Made by a program: the position numbers and the translations under genes. This document shows positions 9,816 through 59,187 of a stretch of DNA of 64,000 nucleotides, one piece after another; the stretch's first letter is position 1; each line of letters begins with the position of its first letter. The stretch comes from Selaginella moellendorffii. Its lineage: Eukaryota; Plantae; Lycopodiophyta. The stretch lies in NCBI RefSeq assembly GCF_000143415.4, contig NW_003314320.1:1067231-1131230 (forward strand). The letters run 5' to 3'. Under the pieces are notes generated by a model. It did not search any database. It saw only the letters and a program-made list of their open reading frames with translations, and was not told the DNA's origin.

Positions 9816-12734
9816 TTACGCTTTCTTGTCAGCCTCGCCCAAGAGCGTGACAACTTGTTGAGCAACAGCGTTGAGAGGATCGAGCTCGAGGATTCTCTCA
9901 GCTGCCAGTCTCTCTCGATTCACATCACCATGCCTGCGACACCATCCCAGCAAGCTCAGCCACATCGCACCTCGAAACTCCATCGCCATCTTGGAAATGA
10001 TCCTCTCCGCTTCTCCCAGCTTTCCTTGTCGTCCCAAGATCTCCACCACGCCTCGAAGGTGCTCCACGCCAGGAACCAAGCCATGATCGCATAGCATCGA
10101 TTCAATCCAGCGATAAACTTCGGTCGCTTCCACGGAACAGTTTATAATGCTCGCAAAGGTGGTGGCGTTTGGCTTGCTACCATCCTGTTGCAGCTCCCAC
10201 AGAAATACCACAGCCTCTTCTCCACGGCCGTGCTGAGCGAACGCCGAGACGAGAGAATTCCAAGAAACCAAGCTCTTCACTGGAACTGCACGCAGGATCT
10301 GGCGAGCGGTTGCTAAGTTTCCGAGCTTTCCGTACATGTCCCCCAGGGAGGTCTTGACGAACGCGTCCTCGAAGAGTCCACACTCTCTGCAAGCGCTGTG
10401 GACGAGATGGCCGACCCGAGAAGTGGACTCCATGCGGCAGGCCGCAAGCACGGTGATGAAGCTCACTTTGTTTGGAGTGATCCCTTCGAGCAGCATCCGG
10501 CGAAACATTGTCACCGCCGTGGCGTGCTGGCCGTGCTGGATGCAAGCTCCGATGAAGTTGTTCCACGAGACGACGAGAACTTTGCGATGATCTTCGAGCC
10601 GATGTTCTTGCTCGATGGACGTGAGCATCTTGTACGCGGTCACCAGGTTTCCACACCGTGCGTACATTGCTACCAGCGAGCTCGCCACCGCCGAGTCCGA
10701 TTCCAGACCACTCTCCAGAACTTGCGAGTGGATCTTCTTGCCTTGGTCCGAGTTGAGAGCTCCGGCACAGGCACCGAGCATCGCAGCAAACGCAACTCCA
10801 TCCGGCCTCACGCCCTCCACTCTCATCACCGGGAGGAACTTAAGAGCTTCTTCGTGCAAGCCTTTGTCCACCAAGCCTGTGATCATCGACGTCCATGCCA
10901 CAACGTTGTTATGCTTGTGGAGGATCACTCTCTCCAAAGCTTGCTCCACGAATCCACTCCTGGCGAGCATGCTCACGAGTGCGTTTGAGACCTGAGCGTC
11001 CGATCCCCAGCCCGACTCCATAACCAAGCTTTCCACCATCGCTCTACACGGCTCGTCCTCACACGCAGCCAAGACTCTAGACAAAGTTACCGAGTTTGGC
11101 GACGCCGCGGCCTCCAGCAGCATCATCCGGAAGCTCTGCATGGCCTCGTCAAAGCAGCCATTGTCTACGTACGATCTGATCAACTCGTTCCACAGCACTA
11201 CGTCGAACGAACTGTTCGTCCTGGTGATCGTGTCGTCGAAGATCTCTCGAGCTCGAGCTGGACATCCACACTTTGCGAACATATTTAGCATGGCGATGCC
11301 GAGAAGAGAGTCGTGCTGCAGCTGCAACTTCAACTCCGTGTTGGTCCACTCCAGGATTTTCGTCCCCAGTGACAAGCACCGGCAAGCGTCCAGGAGTGAG
11401 GTCAGTGTAAACTTATCCGCCGCAAATCCTTGGAGCTGCATCTTTCGGAAGAGCAGCACGGCGCTATCGGCACAGTCGTTCTGGACGCAGGCTGAGATGA
11501 TAGAGTTCCACGACAGAAGGTTTGGACGATCCAGCCGCAGGAAAACCTCGCTGGCTTTCTCCACTTCCCTGCTCCTCGAGTAGAAAGTTATCAAAGCATT
11601 GGACACGGCAACATCGGCGTCGAATCCACCCTCCTCGACGCAGCCACGGACGAGACTCGAGAACTTCTCCCCGCAATCGCAGCTAAGAACACCACCCGCG
11701 AAGGAATTCCCATTGGGAGAAACTCCTTCCAGCAGCATCCGACAGAAAAACGCGATAGCTTCTTCACTGCAGCCGTTCTGAGCGTACGAAGCAACCACCG
11801 CATTCCAGGAGCTCAAGTCTCTCACCGCCATTGTTTCAAACACTTCCATCGCGCGCTCCACCTCGCCAAGCTTCCCGTAAGTTTTCACCAGCGCGTTTCC
11901 AATCGAGACATCGCTAGAAACCAGCCCGCTCTCACAAACTTGCCGATGGATCTCGTCAGCCTCTCGCAAGGAGCAGCACGCATGGAGCGCGGTGAGAAAA
12001 CTGGGAATGTTGTGCCGCAAGCCATCAAGCAGCATTCCCCGGAACAAATGCAAAGCCTCGAAAAAATGCCCGTTCTCGGCATTTGCTGCAGCCATGCTAG
12101 TCCAGCTCGCAGTGCTCTTGTAGCTGATCCCAGAAAAAACCATCTTGGCCTGTGGCAAATCTCCGCACTTCCCATAGAAGTTGACAAGAACATTACCCAC
12201 GACGAGATCGGTGTGGAAGCCCAGCTCGGTGGCGAGCGAGTGAACTCGGTTGCCCGAGCTCCAGTCGGCACAAGCTCCGAGCACCGAGATGAAAGTCACA
12301 ACGCTGGGGACCGTCCCCTCGTGCAGCATCCGGCTGAAAGCGTGGAGCGTGGCCTGGAACTCGCCATGATCTGCCAGAGTTGCGAGCATGGCGTTCCAAG
12401 TGATGACGTTCTTGAGCTTGAGGCTCTCGAAGGCTGCGCGAGCTTCGTCCAAGCTGCCGCATTTGCGATACGCACCGACGATGAGATTGCCGATGAAGAC
12501 GTTGGTTTCCAGGAGTCCTGGGCTGCCGCGGAGGATCTCCTGGTGCAAGAGCCTAGCTTGGGGGAGATCTCGGCACGACTGGAGACGGTCGCCATACTCT
12601 GCTGCTACTGCTGCTGCATCGAGCTCGTGATGATCGAGCGGAGGTCTTGCTGCAAGATCGCAGTGAAGGAAGCGCTTCCAGCAGTGGCTTCTTGTGCTGG
12701 TGATGCGAGCAGCGCGAGCAGCGAGATCAAGCAT
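9816..12734 (-). CDS. PLS-class PPR protein with E-type C-terminus (organellar RNA-editing factor type), no DYW
   Basis: 972-aa intronless ORF with repeated YGKCG/WN..I motifs. E-like tail EHLRGVVEILGRQGKLGEAE...WLSLLGWC. Confidence 0.92.
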   Translation of the reverse strand: MLDLAARAARITSTRSHCWKRFLHCDLAARPPLDHHELDAAAVAAEYGDRLQSCRDLPQARLLHQEILRGSPGLLETNVFIGNLIVGAYRKCGSLDEARAAFESLKLKNVITWNAMLATLADHGEFQATLHAFSRMLHEGTVPSVVTFISVLGACADWSSGNRVHSLATELGFHTDLVVGNVLVNFYGKCGDLPQAKMVFSGISYKSTASWTSMAAANAENGHFFEALHLFRGMLLDGLRHNIPSFLTALHACCSLREADEIHRQVCESGLVSSDVSIGNALVKTYGKLGEVERAMEVFETMAVRDLSSWNAVVASYAQNGCSEEAIAFFCRMLLEGVSPNGNSFAGGVLSCDCGEKFSSLVRGCVEEGGFDADVAVSNALITFYSRSREVEKASEVFLRLDRPNLLSWNSIISACVQNDCADSAVLLFRKMQLQGFAADKFTLTSLLDACRCLSLGTKILEWTNTELKLQLQHDSLLGIAMLNMFAKCGCPARAREIFDDTITRTNSSFDVVLWNELIRSYVDNGCFDEAMQSFRMMLLEAAASPNSVTLSRVLAACEDEPCRAMVESLVMESGWGSDAQVSNALVSMLARSGFVEQALERVILHKHNNVVAWTSMITGLVDKGLHEEALKFLPVMRVEGVRPDGVAFAAMLGACAGALNSDQGKKIHSQVLESGLESDSAVASSLVAMYARCGNLVTAYKMLTSIEQEHRLEDHRKVLVVSWNNFIGACIQHGQHATAVTMFRRMLLEGITPNKVSFITVLAACRMESTSRVGHLVHSACRECGLFEDAFVKTSLGDMYGKLGNLATARQILRAVPVKSLVSWNSLVSAFAQHGRGEEAVVFLWELQQDGSKPNATTFASIINCSVEATEVYRWIESMLCDHGLVPGVEHLRGVVEILGRQGKLGEAERIISKMAMEFRGAMWLSLLGWCRRHGDVNRERLAAERILELDPLNAVAQQVVTLLGEADKKA

Positions 12735-15447: not shown

Positions 15448-18400
15448 ATGTTGGGGCGCCTTCGCCGGAGGGGCAAATCCGACCGCCTTCTCGCGCGAGG
15501 CATCGCGTCCTCTCCTGCTACTGCGCCGAGAGGCAAGAATCTCCTGTCGCGAGAGGATTTCCAGGGTCTGGAGCGAGTGACGAGCCTCCTGGAATCCGGC
15601 AATGCGGGTGAAGCGAGGCGCGTCTTCGATCACGAGGTGAGCCACTTGGACGTACGAGTCTGGAATGGTGTAATCGCCGCCTTCTCCAGGCATCACCATC
15701 GGTGCGAGGAAGAAGAAGATCGAGATCTTCCCTCGGTAGCGCTACTCCATTGCATGCTCCACGAGGGAATCCGGCCCAACGCCACGACGCTGGTGACCAT
15801 CCTCAAGGAATGCAGTACCGACGGCAGCAAGAAGAGGGGGCTGTGGATTGCCAGCGCAGGGAAGCTGATCGAATCTTTAGTTCGCGACGGTGGCTTTGAC
15901 ATTGAAGATCGCATTGGCACCAGTTTGGTAAATATGTATCGCATCTGCGGCAGGCTGGAAGACGCTCGCAGGATCTTCCGCGAGTTCCACTCTCCGAGCA
16001 ACGTTGTGACATGGACTGGGATCATCACAGCAAATGCCGAGAGCGGGCATTTCTCCGAGGCCATCGATCTCTTCCACCGGACGCAGCTCGAAGGTGTGTT
16101 GCTCGACAAGACGAGCTTTCTTGCTGTTGTGAATGCGTGTGCTGATTGTGGGAACTTGGTGGCTGGCAGGTTGGCTCAGAGGCTCGTCAGAGAGGCCGGG
16201 CTTGAGGCCGACGTTGTTCTTGGCAACACGCTCGTCAACATGTATGGGCTGTGCCACAGCGTGGACGAGGCTTGCAGCGTCTTCGACTCGATCCAGGAGA
16301 GGACCTCCGTGAGTTGGAACGTTATGCTCTCGGCTCACGCGAGGCAGGGGAACTTCCAAATGTCGCTCATCGTCTTCCGGCTGATGCAACTCGATGGATT
16401 CAAGCCCGAGGCCATCACTTTCCTGGCCGTGCTTGAGTCGTGTGCCGCGGTGGGATCGCTTGAGACGGGGAAGCTCGTCCATTCCAACATCCAGGAACAG
16501 ATTGGGGAGCTGGATCCGCAAGTTGGCGATGCGGTCGTCAACATGTATGGGAAGTGTGGAGCGGTGGAAGAAGCTGCCAGAGTTTTCGACGAGCAGGGAC
16601 ACAGGAGGAGTGTGGTGTCGTGGAACTCGATGATCGCCGCGTTCTTCCTCAATGTGTTGCTCGAGGAAGCATTCCGGTGTTTTCGGACGATGCAACTCCA
16701 AGGTTTCCATCCCAACTTTGCGACGTTTGTCAACCTTCTTCACGGGTGTACCGATCTAGAAGCTCTTGCGGAGGGTGATGCTGTCTACGGGATGGTCGCC
16801 GAGACGGAGTTCCATTCCGAGCCTGGGATAGAGATCGCGCTCGTCAACATGTACTCGAGCTGCGGGGAACTTGATGCTGCTTATCAGATCTTGCAAGGCC
16901 GAGACGACGTGTCTCTACCATGGAGCAGTTTTCTTCGTGCAACTGCGAGATATGGCTATTCGAATGAGACTCTTGCAGTTCTTCGACGGATTCAGCTCAA
17001 CGGGATCTTTCCGAACACCACTGCTCTCGTCTCTGGTCTCAGTGCCTGCGTTGCTCCAGGGTTCCTAAGAAGCGGTACCGGGATTCATGAGCTGGTTCTT
17101 GAGGCTGGAATACAGCATCACTTGGTCGTCGCCACAGCACTCTTCGTCATGTATGGGAAGTGCAAGAGCTTGGACCATGCTCGGCTCTTGTTCGACGGAA
17201 TGGTACAGCGAGACTCAGTTGCCTGGAACGCGATCATGTCACTCTACTCCAGCTATGGCCGCCACGAAGGAGTCATCGAGCTTTTTAGGAGCATGCTGCA
17301 AGAGGGTGTGAGATTCAACAGGGCCAGCTTCTGCATCGTTCTCTCGTCTCTGGTCTACCCGGCAATGCTACTGATCGGGGAGAGTGTCCACTCCATGGCC
17401 AGCCAGAAAAACTACGACGAGGACGACGTTGTAGCTGGTGCATTGGTGACCATGTATGCCAGGCTTGGCAAGCTTGAGAAAGCTAGGGAAATCTTCGACC
17501 GGGTGAGCGCGAAAGAGCCGAGCACAGCTCTCTGGACAGCCATGATCTCGGCCTGCGTCGAGCACAGAGAGTTTGCCGACGCGCAGCTACTATTTCGACG
17601 CATGCAGCTGGAAGGTGTGCTCCCGGACAGCTTCACCCTGGCTTGCGCTGCCGCCGTAGTAAACTCGCTCGAGATGACGCTGCTTAACGTTGCTGCTCGT
17701 CAGAGAAGCCTGGACAACAACGTCAGGCTTTGCAACGCTCTTGTCGAAGCCTACGGGAGCAAGGGAGAGCTCGACAAAGCGCTCGATATGTTCGAGAGCA
17801 CGGAAGAGAAGACTCAAACAAGCTGGAGCCTGGTGATTACGGCGGCCACGGAAAATGCAAGACACCACCAGGGACTAGCTCTCTATCACCAGATGCTGCT
17901 CGAAGGTTACCGACCGGACAAAGTCTCGCTGCTGGCAGCTCTGGGAGTTTGCTCCAGCCTCGCCTCTCTCAAGTCGGGACGCAGGATCCACGAACAGGTC
18001 GTGGAAGCCGGGCTCGAGCCGGACGAAGTCGTGGCCAGCGCCCTGGTGGACATGTATGGGAAGTGTGGAAGCTTGGAGGCTTCACGAGCAGTGTTCCAGA
18101 GGTCCGAGAAGCAGGATCCCGTGCTTTGGAACTCACTGCTAGCGGTGGAAGCTAGATGTGGAGGGGACGCATTGAGACTCTTCCACTGGATGCAGCAAGA
18201 TGGTTTGAGGTCCGACGGTGCTTCGTTCGTCAGCCTTCTCGCGGCGTGCAGCCATGCTGGGGTGGAAGACAAGGCCTGGGACTACTTCGCAGCGATGAAG
18301 TGGGATTTTGGTGTGGTGCCTGCTTCGGAGCACTTTGGTTGCATGGTCGATCTGCTGGCGAGAACCGGGAAGCTTGAAGCTGCGGAGGAGCTGATCTTCA

Positions 18401-18645
18401 AGTCGAGGCTGAGGCTGGATTCGAGGCTGTGGATCACGCTGCTGGCGGCTTGTAACGCGAACGGGGACGTGAGCAGGGGGGAGCGAGCAGGGATGAACGC
18501 TCTGGTTTTGGATCCACAAAACTCTGGGCTCTATGTGACGCTTGGGAACATGTTTGCGGCGGCAGGGAGGGAGCAAGATGCTCGAAACATGAGAGCGGCC
18601 TTGGATGAGTTGCGAGCTTTGTCCAGCAAAGACAAAGAAACTTAG
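15448..18645 (+). CDS. PLS-class PPR protein with E domain, no DYW
   Basis: 1065-aa intronless ORF. E domain EHFGCMVDLLARTGKLEAAE...WITLLAAC...LDPQNSGLYVTLGNMFAAAGR. Confidence 0.93.
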   Translation: MLGRLRRRGKSDRLLARGIASSPATAPRGKNLLSREDFQGLERVTSLLESGNAGEARRVFDHEVSHLDVRVWNGVIAAFSRHHHRCEEEEDRDLPSVALLHCMLHEGIRPNATTLVTILKECSTDGSKKRGLWIASAGKLIESLVRDGGFDIEDRIGTSLVNMYRICGRLEDARRIFREFHSPSNVVTWTGIITANAESGHFSEAIDLFHRTQLEGVLLDKTSFLAVVNACADCGNLVAGRLAQRLVREAGLEADVVLGNTLVNMYGLCHSVDEACSVFDSIQERTSVSWNVMLSAHARQGNFQMSLIVFRLMQLDGFKPEAITFLAVLESCAAVGSLETGKLVHSNIQEQIGELDPQVGDAVVNMYGKCGAVEEAARVFDEQGHRRSVVSWNSMIAAFFLNVLLEEAFRCFRTMQLQGFHPNFATFVNLLHGCTDLEALAEGDAVYGMVAETEFHSEPGIEIALVNMYSSCGELDAAYQILQGRDDVSLPWSSFLRATARYGYSNETLAVLRRIQLNGIFPNTTALVSGLSACVAPGFLRSGTGIHELVLEAGIQHHLVVATALFVMYGKCKSLDHARLLFDGMVQRDSVAWNAIMSLYSSYGRHEGVIELFRSMLQEGVRFNRASFCIVLSSLVYPAMLLIGESVHSMASQKNYDEDDVVAGALVTMYARLGKLEKAREIFDRVSAKEPSTALWTAMISACVEHREFADAQLLFRRMQLEGVLPDSFTLACAAAVVNSLEMTLLNVAARQRSLDNNVRLCNALVEAYGSKGELDKALDMFESTEEKTQTSWSLVITAATENARHHQGLALYHQMLLEGYRPDKVSLLAALGVCSSLASLKSGRRIHEQVVEAGLEPDEVVASALVDMYGKCGSLEASRAVFQRSEKQDPVLWNSLLAVEARCGGDALRLFHWMQQDGLRSDGASFVSLLAACSHAGVEDKAWDYFAAMKWDFGVVPASEHFGCMVDLLARTGKLEAAEELIFKSRLRLDSRLWITLLAACNANGDVSRGERAGMNALVLDPQNSGLYVTLGNMFAAAGREQDARNMRAALDELRALSSKDKET

Positions 18646-34229: not shown

Positions 34230-36296
34230 TTACTGAACCTGCTTTATGCCTTCGAGGTGCATTCTCTGGAAGAGTTTCAAAGCCTGTCTCTTGTGCCCGT
34301 TTGCAGCAAAAGCCGTGACAATACCAGACCATGCTTCCTGGCCTCGCTCCTGCAACCCATCGAAAACCAGCATTGATTCCTCGAACTGCTTGTAGCGAGC
34401 ATACATCTCGATCAAAGCAATAGCAACCAGCGGATCAAACTGCAAAATCCCGCTGTCCAAGATACTATCGTGGATGATCTTCCCCTCGCAGGCGCTTCCA
34501 CAAGCCTCTAAGATCCTCGCGAACGCCACTTTGTCGGGCTTGACGCCCTCCAAGTCCATTTCTCTAAACGCTTGCATCGCATCTCTGAAACTCCCATGTT
34601 GGCTGTAAACAGTGATCATTACCGTCCAAGTCCCCAGCTCTTTTTGAGGCAGCTCGTTAAACACGGCCTTTGCACCTCCAAGATCTCCCTTCTGGGAAAA
34701 TGCGATGATCAGAGAGTTGACAGAAGCGGCACTCCACTGGGGCATGCTTAGAAAAATCCCCACTGCGCGATCGAGGTGCTCGGCTTGACAGTACGCTGCT
34801 ACCATCCAGCTCCAAGCCAGAGAATTTTTCCTGGGAATTTCTTCAAAGGCCTTGCAAGCGTCTTCAATCCTTCCATTCTCACCATAAACTGATACCATTG
34901 CGATCCAGGCAGATAAATCCCTCTGCGGCATCTTCTCAAACACTTCAGCCGCCTCGTAAATATGCCCATTTTGGGCATATGCGTCAACCATAGCACTCCA
35001 CGGCAGGAGATTCTTTTTCTCCATGCAATCAAACAGTTCTTGAGCTTCGTCACACAGGTGATTTTCTCCGTAAGCTCTTAGCATAAGCGTGGTAGACACT
35101 GCATTTTTCACAGGAATACTCTCAAACGCCAACGCTGCTTGGGGGATATACCCGTTTTGGGCATATCCCTGGATCATCGCATTACAAGATGCCAGGAAAT
35201 GCTGCGGCATCTTGTCAAAGACACTCCCGGCTTGGAGGACAAATCCCGACCGCACGTATGCCTGCACCAGTGTCGTCCAACACACGGCATCTCTCCGAGG
35301 AACGTGGTCGAAGATATCCCGACATGCCTGGAGATTCCCAACCAGAGAATATCCCGAGATCAAGTGTGTCCAGGTGATGATATCCCTCTGGGGAGCGTCG
35401 TTGAGCAAACAGTGCGCCGTTTCTACCAGCGATAGACGACAGTAGCCACCGATGAGCGCATTCCAGGTGATTAGATCTCGCTGTGGCATCCGATCGAATA
35501 GGAGCTGGGAATAATCAAGATGCCCGCTGGAGGCGAGCGATTGTAATACTGCATTCCAAGAGGCTTCGTTCTTGGCAGGCATCGCGTCAAACAAGACTTT
35601 GGAAAATTCAGTCCCCAGATCCCCGCTGTCGGAATATGCAGAGATCATAGCGTTCCATGCAACAATATCACGAAATGGCATTAGATTGAAAAGGTCTTCG
35701 GCTTCGATAGTCTGGCCGTCTTGCGCAAGAGCTTTGATCATCAAAGTCCAGGTAATAACGTCCCGAAGATCCATTTGATCAAACACTCGCTTGGCATTGA
35801 CAACATGCCCGTTTTGGGCATATGCTGCGATCATCGTGTTGCAAGAGATAGTGGTGGGCTTCTTAATCTGAAAGAACGTTGCGAATGCACTCACCACGTC
35901 CCCGAAATTTCCATACATCTGCACAAGATGGTTCTCCAAAAATGTGCGATCGCCTCGCCAATGCTGGAGAATATGGCCGTGGACGCACTTCCCCTCTTCT
36001 AGCGATTTGGAGGCTCCACATTTCTTGAGAAGATTTGCGTACGTTGCTGCATCCAAGGGAATGTTCCAGCTCTCGAGCGCCTGGATTGCATCCTTGAGGC
36101 TTTTGGAGTGCAACTGAGATGGATCTAATTCTACTTGGCAATTGCCACTGAGGACTCTACTGGCCAGTGTGGACCAGATCTCCCACTTTCCATGTCGAAG
36201 TGTCTCGCTCATCCATCGCAGGTAGCTTTCTGGAAGGCTACCAAGTGGTTTTCCAATGTGATGTCCAAAATCCAGCACCCGGTCTTTAATTAGCAT
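34230..36296 (-). CDS. PPR protein with a long tandem array of ~31-aa (S/SS-type) motifs and an N-terminal DUF3820-like domain; no E/DYW
   Basis: 688-aa ORF. N-terminus VLDFGHHIGKPLGSLPESYLRWM; repeats FD.MP.RD...W..MI..Y...G. Confidence 0.85.
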   Translation of the reverse strand: MLIKDRVLDFGHHIGKPLGSLPESYLRWMSETLRHGKWEIWSTLASRVLSGNCQVELDPSQLHSKSLKDAIQALESWNIPLDAATYANLLKKCGASKSLEEGKCVHGHILQHWRGDRTFLENHLVQMYGNFGDVVSAFATFFQIKKPTTISCNTMIAAYAQNGHVVNAKRVFDQMDLRDVITWTLMIKALAQDGQTIEAEDLFNLMPFRDIVAWNAMISAYSDSGDLGTEFSKVLFDAMPAKNEASWNAVLQSLASSGHLDYSQLLFDRMPQRDLITWNALIGGYCRLSLVETAHCLLNDAPQRDIITWTHLISGYSLVGNLQACRDIFDHVPRRDAVCWTTLVQAYVRSGFVLQAGSVFDKMPQHFLASCNAMIQGYAQNGYIPQAALAFESIPVKNAVSTTLMLRAYGENHLCDEAQELFDCMEKKNLLPWSAMVDAYAQNGHIYEAAEVFEKMPQRDLSAWIAMVSVYGENGRIEDACKAFEEIPRKNSLAWSWMVAAYCQAEHLDRAVGIFLSMPQWSAASVNSLIIAFSQKGDLGGAKAVFNELPQKELGTWTVMITVYSQHGSFRDAMQAFREMDLEGVKPDKVAFARILEACGSACEGKIIHDSILDSGILQFDPLVAIALIEMYARYKQFEESMLVFDGLQERGQEAWSGIVTAFAANGHKRQALKLFQRMHLEGIKQVQ

Positions 36297-50860: not shown

Positions 50861-51714
50861 GATCGCGATCGCGAGGAAACCCACCCAAAACCCCGATTCT
50901 CCAAAAGGCGAAACGAACTAATAAGCTATATGCCAAGTGACCAACAAGAACTCGATAGATGGTACGAGGGCGTCACATCAAAGGAGCGTTTCACGCTTTC
51001 CGGTGGAAGTCATAGAACAGACGTTTGCTCTTTCCTTTCCTTCTTTGTTTTCTGCGAGGTACTCTTTCTTCTCAGCAGCTGTTCTAGGAGGATTTGCTCC
51101 TCTCCTCGCACGCATCATGGCTACAAATTCATTGTAGTAGATCTTCCCGTCCTGTGAATAGTTTCACTCAATCCTGCGAGTGACTTACATTGTGTGTGAC
51201 CACTTCTTTGATGGTTTCATTCAAGTCCTGCGTGTTTGGATCGCTAAGAGCTTGCTCCAGTTCTTCGACAGTGATGTACCTGACCGATGAAAAAACTTGG
51301 AAAAAAAAAAAATGAGATCTTTACGCTGTTATCCTTGCCGAGACACTGGAAAGCCGAATTTTGTTGAGATGCATGGTCGCCGTGATAACCTCCGTGTAAT
51401 CGATTGAGGCCAATTTCAGCAGCGCCAGCCTAGAAGGACAAAATGAAAAACGAACCAAAAATACCCAGAAAGAGCGACACTAAGCAAACTTACGACTTCG
51501 TGATCCCAAGTTTACAAGTCCGGCTTTTAACTCGTCGTACGTGATCGAGATTTAAATTAGCCAAGGCTAACCATCATATCAGCTCGGCTTTCCTCTGGAT
51601 CTTCGAGGGCAGCCTTCCTTTCGGAGAAAACAAGCTTTTTCTTTGCTTTTTCACAGTAACCTCTGCACAAGCATATGCTACGTAAGATAAAACATTTCCT
51701 AGAGCTATACGTAC

Positions 51715-54700
51715 TGAAACGAATCGACTCGACTAGAGATTGAATTGATAACACGCTGTTATAATCTATCTCAGTCTAACTGTCGCGACCGTTGACTCTT
51801 CAGCTTGTCGGCATATTCCCCTGAATATTAACACTCCCACTCAAGCTGAACGTCGACGTTGCGTCAGTTCTTTGGCTGCACTCCAAGTGCCTGTGCATGC
51901 TGCTGGAACAGAGCTGGAGCAAGAGCTTTGGTGAAGATATCCGCCACCATCTCCTTGGTAGTGTAGTAGACCAGCTCCACAGTCTGCAGAGCAACCTGTT
52001 CACGTATAAAATGGAACTGAACCTGAATGTGCTTGGTCCTGCGATGGAACTTCGGATTTTTCGCCAATGCTATGGCTCCTTGATTATTGCAGAAGAGCTC
52101 CGTCGCTTCCTCCTGCTTATAGCTGAGCCCGTCCAGCAAAGTTCTCAGCCAAATGCACTCCTTGGTTGCTTGAGTGATGCCGATATACTCTGCCTCTGTG
52201 AGCTTTGTTACTCGAGTGGATCGACATAACGGTGGAGCTGAAACGGCAACCTCTCTGCCATCTGAAGCCTGCTGATCAAGACCCACTGCCTGATCACTCG
52301 CTTGAGAGCTCCCCCCCTGATCGGCCTGACTCCCACCCGCTGGTGAGATCGGATTACCGCCACCTGCAGCTGGAGGCTCACTAACTCCAGCTCCGATTGC
52401 TGAACCTGGCCCCAGATCACGCTGGCTCCCACTGGCTCCATGCCCTGTGGCTGAACCCTGCGTACCTGGCTGGCGTCCGCTCCTCGTTCTCCCATAACTC
52501 GCTGCCCTAACTTCTTCATCCGAGTTATCCGAGTCCGAGGTAACCTCGGGCGATACCAAAGTTGGCGGTGGTGGGAGGGCCCGAGTGCCGTAAGTTCTGG
52601 TCTCGTTGAAGATGACATCTCTGGCCACGATCAACTTCTGAGTCTCCAGGTTGAACAACTTGTAGCCTTTCATCTGTTCGGAGTAGCCGACGAGAACACA
52701 CTTCTGACTGGTTCTTTCAAGCTTGCTGCGATGATGTCGCTTTACATGAGCGTAGCAGACACTCCCGAACACTCGCAGATGGCTGATGTCTGGTTTACTC
52801 CCATACCAAGCTTGATAGGGAGTTTGACCCGAAACTGCAACAGTGAGCTGTCTGTTCCTCAGATAAGCGGCGGTCTCCATCGCCTCACACCAAAAAAACT
52901 TTGGAAGGCCTGAGTCTTCCAGCAGGGTTCTTGCTACATCTTGCAGCGTCCTGTTCATCCTCTCTGCTACACCGTTCTGCTGCTGAGTGTCTGGGATGGA
53001 GAATTGACGTTGTATTCCAGCTGAACTACAAAACTCATCAAATTCTCTCGACACAAACTCGCCACCGCCATCGCTCCTGAATGCCTTGATCAGCTTTCCT
53101 GTCTGGAGCTCCACCTGAGCTTTGTAGTCCTTGAACTTCTGGAACACCTCTGATTTCTTCCTCAGGAACTTGATGGCCACGATGCGAGAAAAATCGTCCA
53201 CGAACGTGACAAAGTACTGTTTCCTGTCTCTGGACATATTCGGCATTGTGCCAACATCAGAGTGAACCAAGTCCAGGATTCCCTTAGCTCGGTTAGTGGA
53301 TGCAGTTGGATGAGGGAGCCTGTGAGCTTTACCCAGTGCACACGGCTCGCAAAACGAGCTGCCACCTGCTGGAGGAGTTATGCGGAGGCCGATCACCAGC
53401 TCCTGCTTGCTTAGCTGCTTCAACGCCTGCTGGTTGGTGTGACCCAATCTCCTGTGCCAAGTCGCAGTGTCGACTGCCTTCTGGGCACCGGCGTAGCACA
53501 ACCGCTGTGGCTGGATCACTTCTGCATTCAGCCTGTAAAGGCCCAAGTACCTACGTCCACTGGCCAGCATCTTGTCATCTGATCCTTTGATCCTGCAGCC
53601 ATTGTTGTCAAACTCGACTTTAAGGCCATGATCAGCGATCTTCCCGACTGAGAACAGCGTCTTCGGGACTCCAGGAACATAGTACATGTTGTGAATGGGA
53701 ACCACTTGTCCAGATGCTAGCTGCACCTGAATTGTCCCCACACCTTTCACTTCATGAGAGTAGTCATTGCCTAGGTAAATCCTCTGGTCCTTGACTGGTA
53801 GCAGCTTGGAGAACAGCTCTCGGACGTGTGTCATGTGCTGGCTTGCTCCGGAGTCGACCCACACAACCTCTGCTGCTGTGGTACTGACTGTACTCACTCG
53901 ATCGGGCTGTGTCGACTGGTGACTCTGGTGCTTCTCTGCACTCACCCTCCTTGCCATGAACAGACTGTCATGGCACTCAGCTTCATCTTCATCTTCCTCA
54001 TCTGAAGTTGCTGCCTCTCTCTTCGAATGAGCAGATTTTGCATAGTTTGCCACCTGCTTCTTCTTGCCTTTCTTCGCCATCGCATCCTTCCTGGCCTGCC
54101 ATGCCTTCTTTGCCTCAGCATGAGTGCAGTCTCTGGCAAAATGACCTGGTGCTTTGCATGCGTTGCATCTGTCATCACGTTTGCTGCGCTTGCTCTTGCT
54201 GGTGCCGCCTTTGTCCACCTTATTCACTGGGCCCAGCCGATCCCACACTGTGGTTGACCGCTTGCCGTTTGCTGTGAACAGAGCAAGTTCTACCTTCTCC
54301 TCCTTGTTCTTTTCCTCGGGGCTGAGGAAGTTCTCAAGAGCTGAGAGTTCTGCAACAATCTCCTCAAAGGTGAGGTGAGAATTCATGAGATGGGCTCCAG
54401 AAACGAGTAAGGTTGTGGAGAGTCCCTTGAACAGCGCTGATGTGAGCTCGTCGTCACCGACCGGATTCACCTGAGCGTCAGTGATCTGCTGTGCAAGGTC
54501 CATAAGGCGACTGGCATAGTCATTTACTGAACTACTGCCCTGTTGACACCCGTTGAACTGGGTTTTCAGATCGATCAACCGTACCCTGCTGCATGTGCCA
54601 AAAACCTGGCAGATCTTCTCCCAATTCGCCTTCGCTGTATCCTCCATGTTCAGGTGGCTCCTGTATCTTTTTGCCAGAGCACGACCTAAGATGCCCAACG

Positions 54701-55119
54701 CCTTGTCGTTCTTGGCATCCCAATCCTTGCGCTTTGCTTTCAAGGTGTCCACCGGATCCTCATCCTTTGTTTCTTCTTCACCCTCCTTCGCTTTCTTCTT
54801 GGTCTGCCGGACTGGTGATGGAGGTCGCCGTTCCTTTCCCCTCACCACATTCCACAGATCCTTTTCCAGGAAGTAGAGTTGCATCTGAAGTTTCCACGAC
54901 GGAAAATCTTTGCCATCGTAGACTTCGAGCACTTGCGACGACGACGGAGACATGCTGCTGCGGGAAACTCGTCTTGATCAGAATCTCGGCTCCGATACCA
55001 TGAAACGAATCGACTCGACTAGAGATTGAATTGATAACACGCTGTTATAATCTATCTCAGTCTAACTGTCGCGACCGTTGACTCTTCAGCTTGTCGGCAT
55101 ATTCCCCTGAATATTAACA
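51715..55119 (-). mobile_element. Ty1/Copia LTR retrotransposon, RT-deleted, with identical 119-bp LTRs
   Basis: LTRs 51715-51833 and 55001-55119 (TG..CA), 5-bp TSD CGTAC, PBS TGGTATCGGAGCC (54988-55000), PPT GCTTGAGTGGGAG (51834-51846). Confidence 0.97.
51864..54953 (-). CDS. Copia gag-protease-integrase fused in frame to the RNase H C-terminal part
   Basis: CNACKAPGHFARDC knuckle, WVDSGASQHM, WHRRLGH, FRSDGGGEF, QQNGVAERMNRTL, then RSTRVTK|LTEAEY...MVADIFTK. No YVDD RT motif. Confidence 0.93.
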   Translation of the reverse strand: MSPSSSQVLEVYDGKDFPSWKLQMQLYFLEKDLWNVVRGKERRPPSPVRQTKKKAKEGEEETKDEDPVDTLKAKRKDWDAKNDKALGILGRALAKRYRSHLNMEDTAKANWEKICQVFGTCSRVRLIDLKTQFNGCQQGSSSVNDYASRLMDLAQQITDAQVNPVGDDELTSALFKGLSTTLLVSGAHLMNSHLTFEEIVAELSALENFLSPEEKNKEEKVELALFTANGKRSTTVWDRLGPVNKVDKGGTSKSKRSKRDDRCNACKAPGHFARDCTHAEAKKAWQARKDAMAKKGKKKQVANYAKSAHSKREAATSDEEDEDEAECHDSLFMARRVSAEKHQSHQSTQPDRVSTVSTTAAEVVWVDSGASQHMTHVRELFSKLLPVKDQRIYLGNDYSHEVKGVGTIQVQLASGQVVPIHNMYYVPGVPKTLFSVGKIADHGLKVEFDNNGCRIKGSDDKMLASGRRYLGLYRLNAEVIQPQRLCYAGAQKAVDTATWHRRLGHTNQQALKQLSKQELVIGLRITPPAGGSSFCEPCALGKAHRLPHPTASTNRAKGILDLVHSDVGTMPNMSRDRKQYFVTFVDDFSRIVAIKFLRKKSEVFQKFKDYKAQVELQTGKLIKAFRSDGGGEFVSREFDEFCSSAGIQRQFSIPDTQQQNGVAERMNRTLQDVARTLLEDSGLPKFFWCEAMETAAYLRNRQLTVAVSGQTPYQAWYGSKPDISHLRVFGSVCYAHVKRHHRSKLERTSQKCVLVGYSEQMKGYKLFNLETQKLIVARDVIFNETRTYGTRALPPPPTLVSPEVTSDSDNSDEEVRAASYGRTRSGRQPGTQGSATGHGASGSQRDLGPGSAIGAGVSEPPAAGGGNPISPAGGSQADQGGSSQASDQAVGLDQQASDGREVAVSAPPLCRSTRVTKLTEAEYIGITQATKECIWLRTLLDGLSYKQEEATELFCNNQGAIALAKNPKFHRRTKHIQVQFHFIREQVALQTVELVYYTTKEMVADIFTKALAPALFQQHAQALGVQPKN

Positions 55120-56180
55120 CGTACCTGGCCAACTGAAGAAGAAAGAATGGAGAGCCTTTCCTCCCTGTAAATCCTGTCTAAATCCGAGTTGCAACCTCAG
55201 ACAGACTCTCGGCAATCACCTTGATGAAAATTCTTGAAGGAATGCAAAACAGAGAAGAGCGTCACCTTAAAAGTGCAAGCTTCTTGAGCTTGTTCATGGG
55301 CGGAAAACTGCTTCATTCGTGACAGCACTGGGTTGTCCAGCGGACCTCTGGTGCCTCGCTATCTTCTTTGAGCCAAGGGAGGATTCGACGACGTGATCAA
55401 AGCGAAGCGTGCCCTCTCACCGTCTCGATATTCTAGAAATCACAAAGCCTGCTTAATATCCCGAGAAACATCTTACCAGTAGACACTCCTTCGGGTCTTG
55501 CGCAGCAAATCCTTGGCGATCAAAGGGCCGCGAAGAAATGCATCGAAAATTCCTTGCTGAGATTTCTCTTGGAGGTGTTTAAGATGATCTTTTACCAGCC
55601 CAAAGGTGGAACACCAATGTATACAATATGCACCGGCATAGTTGAGTCTAAGAACTGCCAGCAAGATCTTTGAAGGTCTCACCTGGAAGAAAGAAGGAAC
55701 AAAACTGAAAAAAGAAGGGAAGTGCCAGGTACAATATGATGAAGAACGAATGCGTTTTTTCCTGGAAGGAAAACGTTCTCACACAGGGAGGAAGATGAGA
55801 AACAACGAAGAAAAACGGACGAAGAAAGTAGGCGAAGGCATATACCGATCGATCGATCTAAGTTTGAGATTAAAGCATGGTTCCAGGAAGAAAAAGAAAC
55901 AAGAAGAGGAAAGAAGAAGATTTCCGAGATTTACGTATAGAATAGTAGGAACTGATCGCCAACAAAACGAAAGAAAAAATACTAGCAACTGTTTAAGCTA
56001 AGCACATTTTTTACAACCGGCATATTCCCAAAGGATACTATATTCATAGAAAGGAGAACATTCTTTATAAAAGGCAATTTTTAAAAAGATCTAGAACTAC
56101 ACGCGGCGAAATCCCAGCTATTGCGCACGCCTATATATCGAGGACTGAGGGAAAGGGTTTCGTCAAATAGACTTAGGGCA

Positions 56181-57215
56181 ATGGCGTGGTGGAAGAGCGT
56201 CATCGCCCCGTTCACGCGCAGGCCCCCGCGCTACTGGGACTTGCCTCACAGGTTCGCTGTCCTAGCCGCCAGCTCCCTCTTGTGGATCGGGCTCGGCAGC
56301 ATCCCTCTCTATGGCATGGCCAAGACGCCGGCGGCGGGCTGGGCATGGGTGCGCGAGGTGTTCGCATCCAGCCCAGGAACTCTCGCAGACCTGGGAGTGA
56401 TATGCTTGGTGGCTGCTAGTCAAGTCAGGGTGAGGCTCGGGTGGGATGTGCCCAAGCCCGAAGACAAAGTCACAAAGTTCGTGATGTTTGGCGTGTCGCT
56501 CCTCGTCCCAGTGCTGCCCCTTGCTGCCGGTCGCTATGGACGTGATCTCGGTCTTGTCAAGGCGCTGCTGCTCTATGCCCAGCTTGCCTTTGCGAATTGC
56601 GTCGCGTGTTTGCTCGTGATTGCCAACGAATTTCGGTTCTGGGGAGTAGGAGTTACCATTGCCGAGCTCCTCCCGGTGGCGATGCTGGGCAAGAGCTTGG
56701 TTGTCAAGGCTCTTGGCAGCGGCGAGGGGCTTGGCACTGGGAATGAAGTGGTGAGCTTGTGGAGCGTTCTTGCCACAGTCACCTTTGTGGCCGTCACGTA
56801 CAAGCTCCACAGGAATTCGATGTTCACGCTGTTTGAAGTCTCGGACTGGCTGCGTCCGGTACAGGTTCTCGCGTTGGCGGCATGGATCTCGAGCATCCTT
56901 TTTCCCAAACACTTCGCAACGCTGTTCGAGGGACGCGGCTTGATCTTGGTGCCGGTGGCGATGGGTTTACTGTTCAAGGCTTTTGCGGCGTGGGAGAGTT
57001 GGGAGCTGGGCTCGTCGGAGACGAATGCTTTTGCCGGGGTGGGGGCTGGAGTGCTGTGCGTGGTGGCGGCTGCCACAGGATGCGTGGGCTCGGCTTTTGG
57101 ATGGCTGATAGTTTGTCGTCTGGTCGTCGAACTTCAAGGCTCGGTGCGCTCTGCGATCATGTGCAAGCGGAGAATGGAGCAAGAGAAGGCAAAGGCATCA
57201 AATCAAACCTTGTAA
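56181..57215 (+). CDS. Highly divergent, intronless, shortened Sec61alpha/SecY-like protein (344 aa)
   Basis: SIPLYGM...WVREVFASSPGTLADLGV ~ QLPLYGI...WMRVILASNRGTLMELGI; GRYG.DLGLVKALLLYAQLAFA; VLATV; GCVGSAFGWLIV ~ GAIGSGTGILLA. TATA box at ~56132. Confidence 0.8.
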   Translation: MAWWKSVIAPFTRRPPRYWDLPHRFAVLAASSLLWIGLGSIPLYGMAKTPAAGWAWVREVFASSPGTLADLGVICLVAASQVRVRLGWDVPKPEDKVTKFVMFGVSLLVPVLPLAAGRYGRDLGLVKALLLYAQLAFANCVACLLVIANEFRFWGVGVTIAELLPVAMLGKSLVVKALGSGEGLGTGNEVVSLWSVLATVTFVAVTYKLHRNSMFTLFEVSDWLRPVQVLALAAWISSILFPKHFATLFEGRGLILVPVAMGLLFKAFAAWESWELGSSETNAFAGVGAGVLCVVAAATGCVGSAFGWLIVCRLVVELQGSVRSAIMCKRRMEQEKAKASNQTL

Positions 57216-57661
57216 CTTCAACGCGTTTGTCATTGCAAACTGAAACTCTACTGATCGACCGATCGCGAATATTTGTTTGTTTTTAAGTTTTTAATAGAAA
57301 GCAACTCTTTGCAAGTGGAAGAAACTTGTCCTTGATTAGCCATAGGATCACCTTTCGGGAACAATGGTGATAGCAATAAAAGCTTGTTTGTTTGGAGCGA
57401 TTCTTGTGAGTGTGTCTTCTTACCTTCCTCAGACATGACAATCTCCACAAACATTTTGTAAGTTTCAAGTTTGATGGCAAAAGCTTTTAAACTACTAAAT
57501 TGCAATAGCATAAGTCACCTACATTTTGGGGGACAAAAAAAGTCCACATTATCAATTCGAGCAAATAATGGCGTGAACCCCCAGGCCACGTGTTGTAGTG
57601 TTATTGGTCCACGTATGATTCGAGTGAGTTTATATTGTGTTTCTAGGGTTTCCAAGGATTA

Positions 57662-59187
57662 ATGGCGGTGTGGGTGAAAGGCAATGGCGAGGAGGCTCGA
57701 CTCTTCCGGCTCCATAACTCGAAGTATCTCATGCTCTGCTCGATTGCAGCGCACTGGGGCTTCGACCCCGACACGCTCCTCGTGGGTCGCTTTGCCCTCT
57801 CCATGGACAAAAGCGGCAACTCCGTCTCAGACGTGGACGAGATCCGGGCATACTCTGCAGCAGCGGGCGCGGGCGATGGTCTCACAGATCAGACTCCATT
57901 TGTCATCACCGGGAAGCCAGCACAAACGATCTGGACCAGTTCCTCTTCGAGGAAACCATCACTAGAGGAGACGTTCGTGGCTGCGGCAATTACAGATGAG
58001 GATTTCAAGAAGCTATCCTACACAGAGTCCAGGAGTGTGCGTCCATACAGGTCGCGCTTGGTGTATCAGCGGTTCAAGGCGATGAGGCAGGAACTCAACA
58101 TCGACGAGTCTGGAGTTCATCACTACATACGTGCGAAGGATGATTTAGGCAGTGCAGTTGCCCCGTTTGTGGGAGCTCTTCACATCGTCCCGAATGGATC
58201 AAGGTTCGATGGCAGTGCACGTCGCCCAGTTGGAATGGTATCACTGGTTCGCTGCGACGGTTACTGCTTGACTGCGGCTAAATGTCTGGAAGGTTTCGAT
58301 GGTGACGACAACACTATCTTCGTCAGCTTCCCACGGATGAGCGGCAGCGGGGATAATTCTTGCTTTTACGAGTGTAAGATTGCCAAGGTCGAAGAGTTTG
58401 TGGTGCACTTGGAGGCTAAAGAGCAACAAAGCTTCAAGACTTGCATGGCTACCCGATTTGGACCTGCGTCTGGCTCAGTTTTCATGTTCAGCGGCCCCAA
58501 CAGCACGCAACTCGTGGAGTGTCCGATGGTTGATTCGTTCGTATGTCCATTCGAGGGCATTGTATTGCCGAGCGCGAAGATCGACCACAAGCTTTCGCTG
58601 GGAGGTCCTGTTGTCAACTGTGTCGGCGAGATGATAGGGGTGATTATTGCACACAGCCTACTGAAGAAGAGCAGCGACTCGAGAGGAAAAGCGTGCGTGA
58701 CCCGGTTTGGAACCAAGATGAAAGTGCAAAGTGTTTCGGACTTGCAGGAGTTTCTAGATGATGCACTGAAATGGAAGAACGTCAACAACAAGCTGGGCAG
58801 CACTCGAGGCGATGCAAAATATGAGAGTTAAGCTCATTGGTCCATCTTTCTGGTTCTCATTCTTTCTTTCTTTTTTTCTTGTCTTTTAGTGTGGAAAAAT
58901 TGCTTGGAACTCAGGAGGTTGGTCCAGTGCACGGGAGCTGACTTCATTTCTCCCGCTCAGGAGTGGTATTCGCAGCATCCACTGTCAGGTTCTTAAACAT
59001 CTATCTGATCTTGTTGATCTAGTAGTTACCAATGTATTCCTTGCTTGCAGAATTTATCAACAGCGCTGTGACGGAGTTTAATGCTCCACCGCTTAAGCGT
59101 CCGAAAGTTAAATACGTCCCCATGTCCGAGGAGAAAATCCTGAAGTTTTACAAGGAGCAGGAGGCTGTCAGAGAGGTTTTTTTCTAG
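57662..59187 (+). CDS. Small N-terminal domain + trypsin-like pseudo-protease; probable two extra 3' exons
   Basis: DGYCLTAAKCL (TAAHC-like) and SLGGPVVNCVGEMIGV (SGGP-like). Putative exons ~58890-58988 and 59051-59187 with basic PPLKRPK. Confidence 0.6.

Follow-up and report, generated by a model that had tools for sequence, protein, structure and literature searches.

In a 64,000-nucleotide (nt) stretch of nuclear DNA from Selaginella moellendorffii (scaffold GL377624.1; referred to here as the window), the gene at 56181-57215 on the forward strand, designated copy A1, is by the evidence of its homology a genuine but extremely divergent derivative of Sec61alpha. A1 appears to be one member of a tandem family of intronless Sec61alpha-derived genes specific to S. 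moellendorffii. For its product we predict a compact ten-helix membrane protein with both termini in the cytosol (N-in/C-in), with the SecY/Sec61 fold and with the plug motif kept. In-frame deletions have taken the tip of the cytosolic loop between transmembrane helices (TM) 6 and 7 (L6/7), nearly all of L8/9, most of the lumenal L7/8 and, in the A lineage, also the L5/6 hinge. We lean towards reading the gene as one for a functional, lineage-specific membrane protein on a SecY scaffold without ribosome docking, which would act either as an accessory or specialised conduit or as a partner-binding regulator.

Descent from Sec61alpha

The coding sequence (CDS) of A1 begins with the ATG at 56181 and its stop codon ends at 57215. 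All 344 codons are open without an internal stop, as seen in both the open reading frame (ORF) list and the translation, so the intact, intronless ORF of 344 amino acids (aa) described in the initial annotation is borne out. The translation is identical to an annotated hypothetical protein of S. moellendorffii, and its sole close relative is SELMODRAFT_423037.

The ORF had also been proposed to be a Sec61alpha paralog, and as a matter of descent this was confirmed by phmmer, a family profile and hhalign. When A1 alone was searched against the Protein Data Bank (PDB) by phmmer, only Sec61alpha/SecY chains were returned, with a best E-value (E) of 1.4e-8 over residues 24-199. A profile built from the four intact family members reached E 3.3e-13 to Sec61alpha and gave a weak second stretch on TM9-TM10 (HMMER). 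Against a 19-sequence Sec61/SecY alignment, hhalign placed TM1-TM5 with 98% probability (E 1.7e-13), while the C-terminal half by itself was aligned collinearly from TM6 to TM10 at 79% (E 1.6e-5), which is weaker than the N-terminal half.

Canonical plant Sec61alpha proteins retrieved here are 85-98% identical among themselves; the identity of A1 to canonical Sec61alpha is about 23%, and A1 is 132 residues shorter. The residues that it keeps include L43, G45, R58, A62, G66, T67, L71, G72, Q134, L135 and A138, all in columns invariant in plant, protist and archaeal Sec61/SecY. The Sec61alpha motifs that had been read from the sequence are therefore present and seated in such columns, and those of the plug (R58, A62, G66, T67, L71 and G72) are invariant over all aligned Sec61/SecY. 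In the phmmer PDB alignment, V73 and V77 of A1 align to V82 and I86 of the yeast TM2 pore ring, while the TM5 pore-ring positions carry a one-residue ambiguity between alignments.

Curated domain models, among them the two Pfam models suggested as a check in the initial annotation, did not recognise the family. None of the four intact copies matched Pfam SecY (PF00344), even with E allowed up to 10, Plug_translocon (PF10559) scored 15.1 bits and thus stayed below its cutoff of 22.1, and NCBIfam SecY reached 21-27 bits against a cutoff of 300. Because these models fail, A1 is annotated as hypothetical.

The stem branch that separates the family from all other Sec61/SecY amounts to at least 2.4 substitutions per site, which exceeds the archaeal-eukaryotic distance in the same tree. 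Placement in this tree was tried as a guide to the parent lineage and was uninformative, as the very long branch was drawn to another long branch. The family most likely derives from a processed (retroposed) Sec61alpha copy that has since diverged extremely far; the lack of introns is the one ground for this origin. Plant Sec61alpha homologs are multi-exon. At such divergence, no poly-A or target-site duplication traces of retroposition are expected.

Loss of the cytosolic and lumenal loops

Hydropathy analysis of A1 revealed ten hydrophobic segments in canonical order, and its Lys/Arg residues fit the positive-inside rule for the canonical topology (16 cytosolic vs 6 lumenal). The features along the gene are as follows.

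56132-56138 (+): TATATAT, candidate TATA box, 43 nt 5' of the ATG; read from the sequence, kept in allele A2, absent upstream of paralog C
56181-57215 (+): compact Sec61alpha-like protein A1, CDS of 344 aa plus stop, intact and intronless; ORF translation, annotated twin protein, Sec61alpha homology
56247-56714 (+): N-terminal half, residues 23-178, with TM1, plug/TM2, TM3, TM4 and TM5; hhalign, intervals within 0-6 residues of canonical
56715-56747 (+): lumenal L5/6 hinge-loop remnant, a Gly-rich linker (about 11 residues) from which about 40 residues of the paralog C loop are missing; family alignment
56748-56804 (+): TM6, residues 190-208, containing LATV; aligned to canonical TM6 by HMMER, MAFFT and hhalign, pN/pS 0.13
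56805-56846 (+): cytosolic L6/7 remnant, residues 209-222; anchor intervals, composition, hhalign
56847-56903 (+): putative TM7, residues 223-241, with Pro226 aligned to the invariant Pro of canonical MPIIL; hhalign, hydropathy
56904-56942 (+): lumenal L7/8 remnant, residues 242-254; anchor intervals
56943-56996 (+): putative TM8, residues 255-272, LFKAFAAWESW, identical in 4/4 intact copies; hhalign, hydropathy
56997-57029 (+): cytosolic L8/9 remnant, residues 273-283; anchor interval, composition
57030-57128 (+): TM9-TM10 hairpin, residues 284-316, with the G..GS..G motif; HMMER second domain, hhalign, spacing 20/20
57129-57212 (+): basic C-terminal tail, residues 317-344, with 6 Lys/Arg, the most variable part between paralogs; pN 0.44, pS 0.56

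The TATA box attributed to the gene is thus a candidate only: the motif is there and is shared by the two A alleles, but it does not extend to paralog C.

Loop lengths were measured as distances between motif anchors common to A1 and a canonical plant Sec61alpha, and paralog C1 was compared as well. In the N-terminal half the successive intervals are 24, 34, 29, 18, 19 and 21 in the canonical protein vs 23, 28, 24, 16, 20 and 22 in A1, with C1 similar to A1; the TM9-TM10 interval is 20 in all three. Between these two regions the protein is cut back. The L6/7 interval, from TM6 to the TM7 lead-in, falls from 36 to 19 in both A1 (about 17 shorter) and C1, and that of L8/9, from the TM8 Trp to TM9, from 44 to 13 in both (about 31 shorter in A1). 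The L7/8 interval as a whole is 87 in the canonical protein vs 44 in A1 (about 43 shorter); its first part, from the TM7 Pro to the L7/8 Gly-Gly, measures 48 vs 26 in A1 and 25 in C1, and its second part, from Gly-Gly to the TM8 Trp, 39 vs 18 and 21. The L5/6 interval, from the end of TM5 to TM6, is 52 in the canonical protein, 21 in A1 (about 31 shorter) and 64 in C1. Hence both the loss of loops 6/7 and 8/9 and the trimming of the lumenal loops, as claimed in the initial annotation, were reproduced by these anchor distances.

The remnants also differ in composition. L6/7 holds 17 residues with 2 Lys/Arg in A1 vs 27 with 5 in the canonical protein. The L8/9 remnant has 10 residues, none of them Lys/Arg and 3 of them Asp/Glu, vs 41 residues with 6 Lys/Arg in the canonical loop, and the PGHR region of that loop (canonical near-invariants G405/R407) is absent from A1. 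As only about 73 residues lie between TM6 and TM9 vs about 160 in the canonical protein, there is no room for two helices plus three canonical loops, whichever assignment of TM7 and TM8 is adopted. Within this stretch, hhalign pairs TLFEVSD..RPVQV with KLFYTSNMPIIL, TLFEVSD with KLFYTSN, and LFKAFAAWESW with LFSKTWIEV.

An annotation artefact in which the loops are hidden in introns was ruled out by the continuous frame and by RNA contigs collinear with the genome at 56459-56971 and 57089-57219. AlphaFold gave a predicted local distance difference test score (pLDDT) of 37 from the four family sequences only; with Sec61 rows added, pLDDT rose to 52 with a predicted template modelling score (pTM) of 0.49, and the N-terminal half was fair. 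Foldseek with this low-confidence model matched only Sec61/SecY (TMq about 0.6), a result that is partly circular, as the model alignment held Sec61 sequences. An ESM Atlas feature search with A1 returned noise only, with scores below 0.8.

Tandem copies on two haplotypes

Paralog C1 lies about 16 kb downstream of A1 on the same strand, outside the window, and is likewise an intronless single ORF, of 393 aa. It shares 70% protein identity and about 85% DNA identity with A1, and keeps the canonical L5/6 hinge FEGA...AFY that is deleted in copy A. On the second haplotype scaffold, GL377658.1, there are allele A2 (346 aa), C2 (390 aa), which is intact, and D2, which is broken, so that four intact copies are available (A1, A2, C1 and C2). 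Copy number and arrangement of the cluster differ between the haplotypes, as judged by synteny.

The broken copies are of different kinds. B1, between A1 and C1 and 13.5 kb downstream of A1 (L001:7287-8562, outside the window), consists of degraded, frameshifted fragments in three frames with 36-79% protein identity. D2 (L004:11245-12262) is 98.4% identical to C1 over its first 615 nt, after which a 143-bp deletion shifts the frame; its gene model runs on in the wrong frame inside the 615-aa chimeric SELMODRAFT_427691. No other copy of A1, frameshifted or intact, was found by tblastn inside the window. The initial annotation had contrasted A1 with frameshifted duplicates elsewhere in the window; for this gene such copies lie outside it and on the other haplotype scaffold. 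Each haplotype thus has two intact genes and a broken copy, and the family evolves by birth and death.

Transcription of the family

Two assemblies from different studies, with 26-30 Mb of contigs in all, were taken to be RNA because gene bodies are covered and intergenic DNA is not; one of them also holds a GT..AG-spliced contig of a neighbouring gene. Run X1 contains a 513-nt contig identical to A1 (56459-56971), and run X2 contains contigs with exactly the seven A2-specific variants. In raw stranded RNA-seq data from 2026 (runs X21/X22), a few reads fell on A1, with the same mate orientation as on the neighbouring plus-strand gene. The same runs show a pile of reads at 56942-57100 whose overhangs match C2 exactly; therefore paralog C is transcribed too. 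RNA-seq, one of the checks proposed beforehand, thus yields transcripts of both A alleles and of paralog C, although at a low level.

Purifying selection and the possibility of a decaying retrocopy

The ratio of nonsynonymous to synonymous substitution rates (dN/dS) was estimated by pairwise codon-model maximum likelihood, with a likelihood-ratio test against 1. It was 0.55 for A1-C1 (p 0.0015) and 0.64 for A2-C2 (p 0.023); between alleles it was 0.31 for A (p 0.038) and 0.51 for C (not significant). The corresponding ratio of proportions of differences (pN/pS) was 0.41 in helices plus plug vs 0.85 in loops plus tails (Fisher p 0.004), and only 0.08-0.27 in TM1, plug/TM2, TM3 and TM6. Purifying selection on the family is weak and focused on the membrane helices.

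The reading frame itself was also evaluated. The approximately 7 indel events that distinguish A from C all have lengths in multiples of three and so keep the frame, for which the chance is (1/3)^7 = 5e-4. In addition, 85 random substitutions leave the frame without a stop in only 6.7% of cases per lineage. Between the haplotypes, the A1 and A2 CDS differ by 1.2% with one in-frame 6-nt indel, compared with 3.2-3.8% and 15 gap events per kb in the 5' flank, whereas the neighbouring expressed gene differs by 1.1%. Since the frame is open after a stem of at least 2.4 substitutions per site, the lineage has been under selection for most of its history.

Several observations weigh against a functional protein. 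The dN/dS values between paralogs (0.55-0.64) are high for a membrane channel, and for C1-C2 the value is not significantly below 1. In TM8-TM10, pS is very low; gene conversion is a probable contributor in this region and blurs the selection estimates. Each haplotype has one broken copy in the cluster (B1; D2), and since D2 is only 1.6% diverged from an intact copy and yet broken, loss is tolerated. Very little RNA was seen: in 12% samples of two 10.8-Gb runs the depth was about 1, and over the first 270 nt of the A1 CDS there is nearly no RNA support, with no contig and one read. On the structural side, the residue assignment of TM7 and TM8 is insecure, MAFFT shifting this stretch relative to hhalign, and the C-terminal half of the AlphaFold model is poor (pLDDT 32-50). 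The family is also restricted in its distribution: when 1.84 billion cluster representatives were scanned exhaustively with HMMER, the only matches were the Selaginella copies and canonical Sec61/SecY, the latter at E 1e-6 or worse, a 90%-cluster search gave two Selaginella clusters only, and a search for transcript fragments with a 161-residue piece found none. Nothing relevant appeared in the literature on Selaginella Sec61, truncated Sec61 paralogs or Sec61 retrogenes.

These points would suit a decaying relic, in which the present genes are young duplicates of an old, unneeded retrocopy, frames and dN/dS reflect residual or recently relaxed constraint together with gene conversion, and the loop deletions are tolerated damage. 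Such a history agrees with the paralog dN/dS and with loops and tails near 0.85, with the broken B1 and D2 and the copy-number difference between haplotypes, with the very low RNA level, the restriction to one species and the failure of any Pfam domain to reach threshold, and with a low-pS region as left by gene conversion. It does not account well for four intact frames with every A-C indel in frame, for a joint chance of about 0.0045 (0.067 squared) that neither lineage acquired a stop, in which the indels are not yet counted, or for helices significantly more constrained than loops. Nor does it explain why the CDS shows a threefold lower divergence than its flank and matches the neighbouring expressed gene in conservation, or why the helix pattern and the universal invariants persist after so long a stem. 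We therefore regard the relic as possible but doubtful.

The family was also compared with processed pseudogenes and retrogenes. Like these, the A1 gene is intronless, has its own non-parental promoter region and has broken sister copies nearby. Unlike processed pseudogenes, the family has an intact frame in four copies, dN/dS significantly below 1, transcription, and a divergence beyond the survival of an unconstrained frame; a disabled frame was found only in B1 and D2, and neither this nor dN/dS of about 1 was found in A1, A2, C1 or C2. The initial annotation had taken the frame-preserving deletions as a sign of selection. What stands of this is dN/dS below 1, indels in frame and intact genes on both haplotypes; it has to be toned down because selection is weak, expression is low, broken copies exist and no ortholog was found elsewhere.

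Predicted function and comparison with known SecY-family proteins

Canonically, the ribosome docks on L6/7 and L8/9, as do SecA and Sec63 in other contexts; structural work locates both loops at the exit site of the ribosome, and L6/7 also at the FN3 domain of Sec63. It has been reported that ribosome binding needs loop 8 and the C-terminal tail, and that the translocation-promoting activity needs loop 6 (PMC2185549). With L6/7 and L8/9 cut away, the A1 product should not engage a translating ribosome canonically and should be unable to dock ribosomes in the canonical way. For a functional protein on such a scaffold, the candidate roles would be a specialised conduit, an insertase, a leak channel or a competitor for Sec61beta/gamma. 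More specifically, A1 might encode a minimal ribosome-independent SecY-fold conduit, i.e. the eukaryotic equivalent of an accessory channel of the SecY2 type, or else an insertase derived from SecY, with the large loops stripped and the ten-helix core and plug kept; we put this forward tentatively and consider it rather unlikely in this precise form.

Specialised SecY-family paralogs include yeast Ssh1, mammalian SEC61A2, plastid SCY2 and the bacterial accessory SecY2, the last being a strongly divergent paralog that acts post-translationally on a narrow set of substrates. What A1 has in common with all four is the duplication of a SecY-family channel subunit followed by divergence from the housekeeping gene. 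To our knowledge, these paralogs keep the cytosolic loops used by the motor or ribosome partner. Ssh1 binds ribosomes (PDB 2ww9), whereas A1 has both docking loops removed. In common with canonical Sec61alpha (e.g. PDB 8dnv, 6n3q), A1 has TM1-TM5 and TM9-TM10 in like order and spacing, the R..AS..GT...LG motif of the plug, PLYG closing TM1, a QL..A motif within TM4 and the predicted N-in/C-in ten-helix topology. Unlike it, A1 lacks the tip of L6/7 together with L8/9 and L7/8 (and, as a copy of type A, the L5/6 hinge as well), and its L8/9 remnant is acidic; the family is also intronless, species-restricted and lowly expressed, with relaxed constraint.

A pure decoy or regulator would conduct no polypeptide; instead, by competing with canonical Sec61alpha for partners in the translocon, such as Sec61beta/gamma, it would modulate secretion, possibly in a tissue- or stress-specific manner. 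TM1, TM3, TM6 and TM8-TM10 are the most conserved helices of the family, and some of them contact Sec61gamma and Sec61beta in published structures of the canonical complex. The ribosome-docking loops are gone, and low expression would suit a regulator. The plug motif and the hydrophobic TM2 pore-ring residues (V73, V77), however, are kept and are not required of a pure decoy, which we consider quite unlikely.

Sec61alpha is among the most conserved eukaryotic proteins, and here it is found at about 23% identity with its loops trimmed and its helix core still under selection. The interest lies in how far, and how cleanly, a near-invariant protein was pared down: the family is a natural deletion experiment on the translocon and reveals what can be retained of the SecY scaffold in the absence of ribosome docking. 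Should the protein be made, it would provide a minimal protein of the SecY fold for studies of structure and mechanism; if the family is a slowly dying set of retrocopies, it would be a mere curiosity of Selaginella genome turnover. Standard domain annotation (Pfam) misses such derivatives entirely.

As a possible intermediate between the family and canonical Sec61alpha, we also looked at P0008 (L005, a Logan contig from run ERR4329564). It is a full-length Sec61alpha of 475 aa, 46% identical to plant sequences, and passes Pfam SecY. Its L6/7 has no basic residues and its L8/9 no PGHR motif. Judged by these loops, it may be another Sec61alpha paralog whose ribosome-docking loops are altered.

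Locus and neighbouring genes

The window's other large ORFs are ordinary plant genes, namely three PPR proteins, a protein kinase, an AP2 factor and a Ty1/copia element. Therefore the locus is no foreign island: an origin in a giant virus or other foreign DNA was ruled out by these genes and by synteny on both haplotype scaffolds. Horizontal transfer of the gene itself from a virus, symbiont or parasite with a reduced Sec61/SecY might be read from its extreme divergence, its similar scores to plant, protist and Asgard-archaeal sequences, the uninformative tree placement and the lack of introns, but it is highly improbable given these neighbours with their conserved synteny, a plant Sec61alpha as best single match, and no donor-like sequence among the 1.84 billion representatives. 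No dedicated partner gene is visible adjoining the A1 locus.

The three PPR genes are long and intronless, at 9816-12734 (-), 15448-18645 (+) and 34230-36296 (-), and one has an E motif. A large PPR expansion is typical of Selaginella, which these genes fit.

The Ty1/copia element occupies 51714-55119, about 1 kb 5' of the Sec61alpha-like gene, with an intact 1029-aa gag-integrase ORF at 51864-54953 (-). As it is present on this haplotype scaffold and precisely missing from the other, it is a recent haplotype-specific insertion.

Between this element and A1, at 55301-55600, RNA reads of opposite mate orientation map partially, with a 117-nt skip (55378/55496, without GT..AG ends) and consistent overhangs on both sides. 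Their probable source is a related sequence elsewhere or an antisense transcript missing from the annotation.

The downstream neighbour of A1 starts with a 389-aa ORF without a Pfam domain at 57662-58831 (+) and continues to about 59240. It is clearly transcribed and spliced (GT..AG joint 58985/59048) and 98.9% conserved between haplotypes; on the other haplotype its gene model measures 533 aa.

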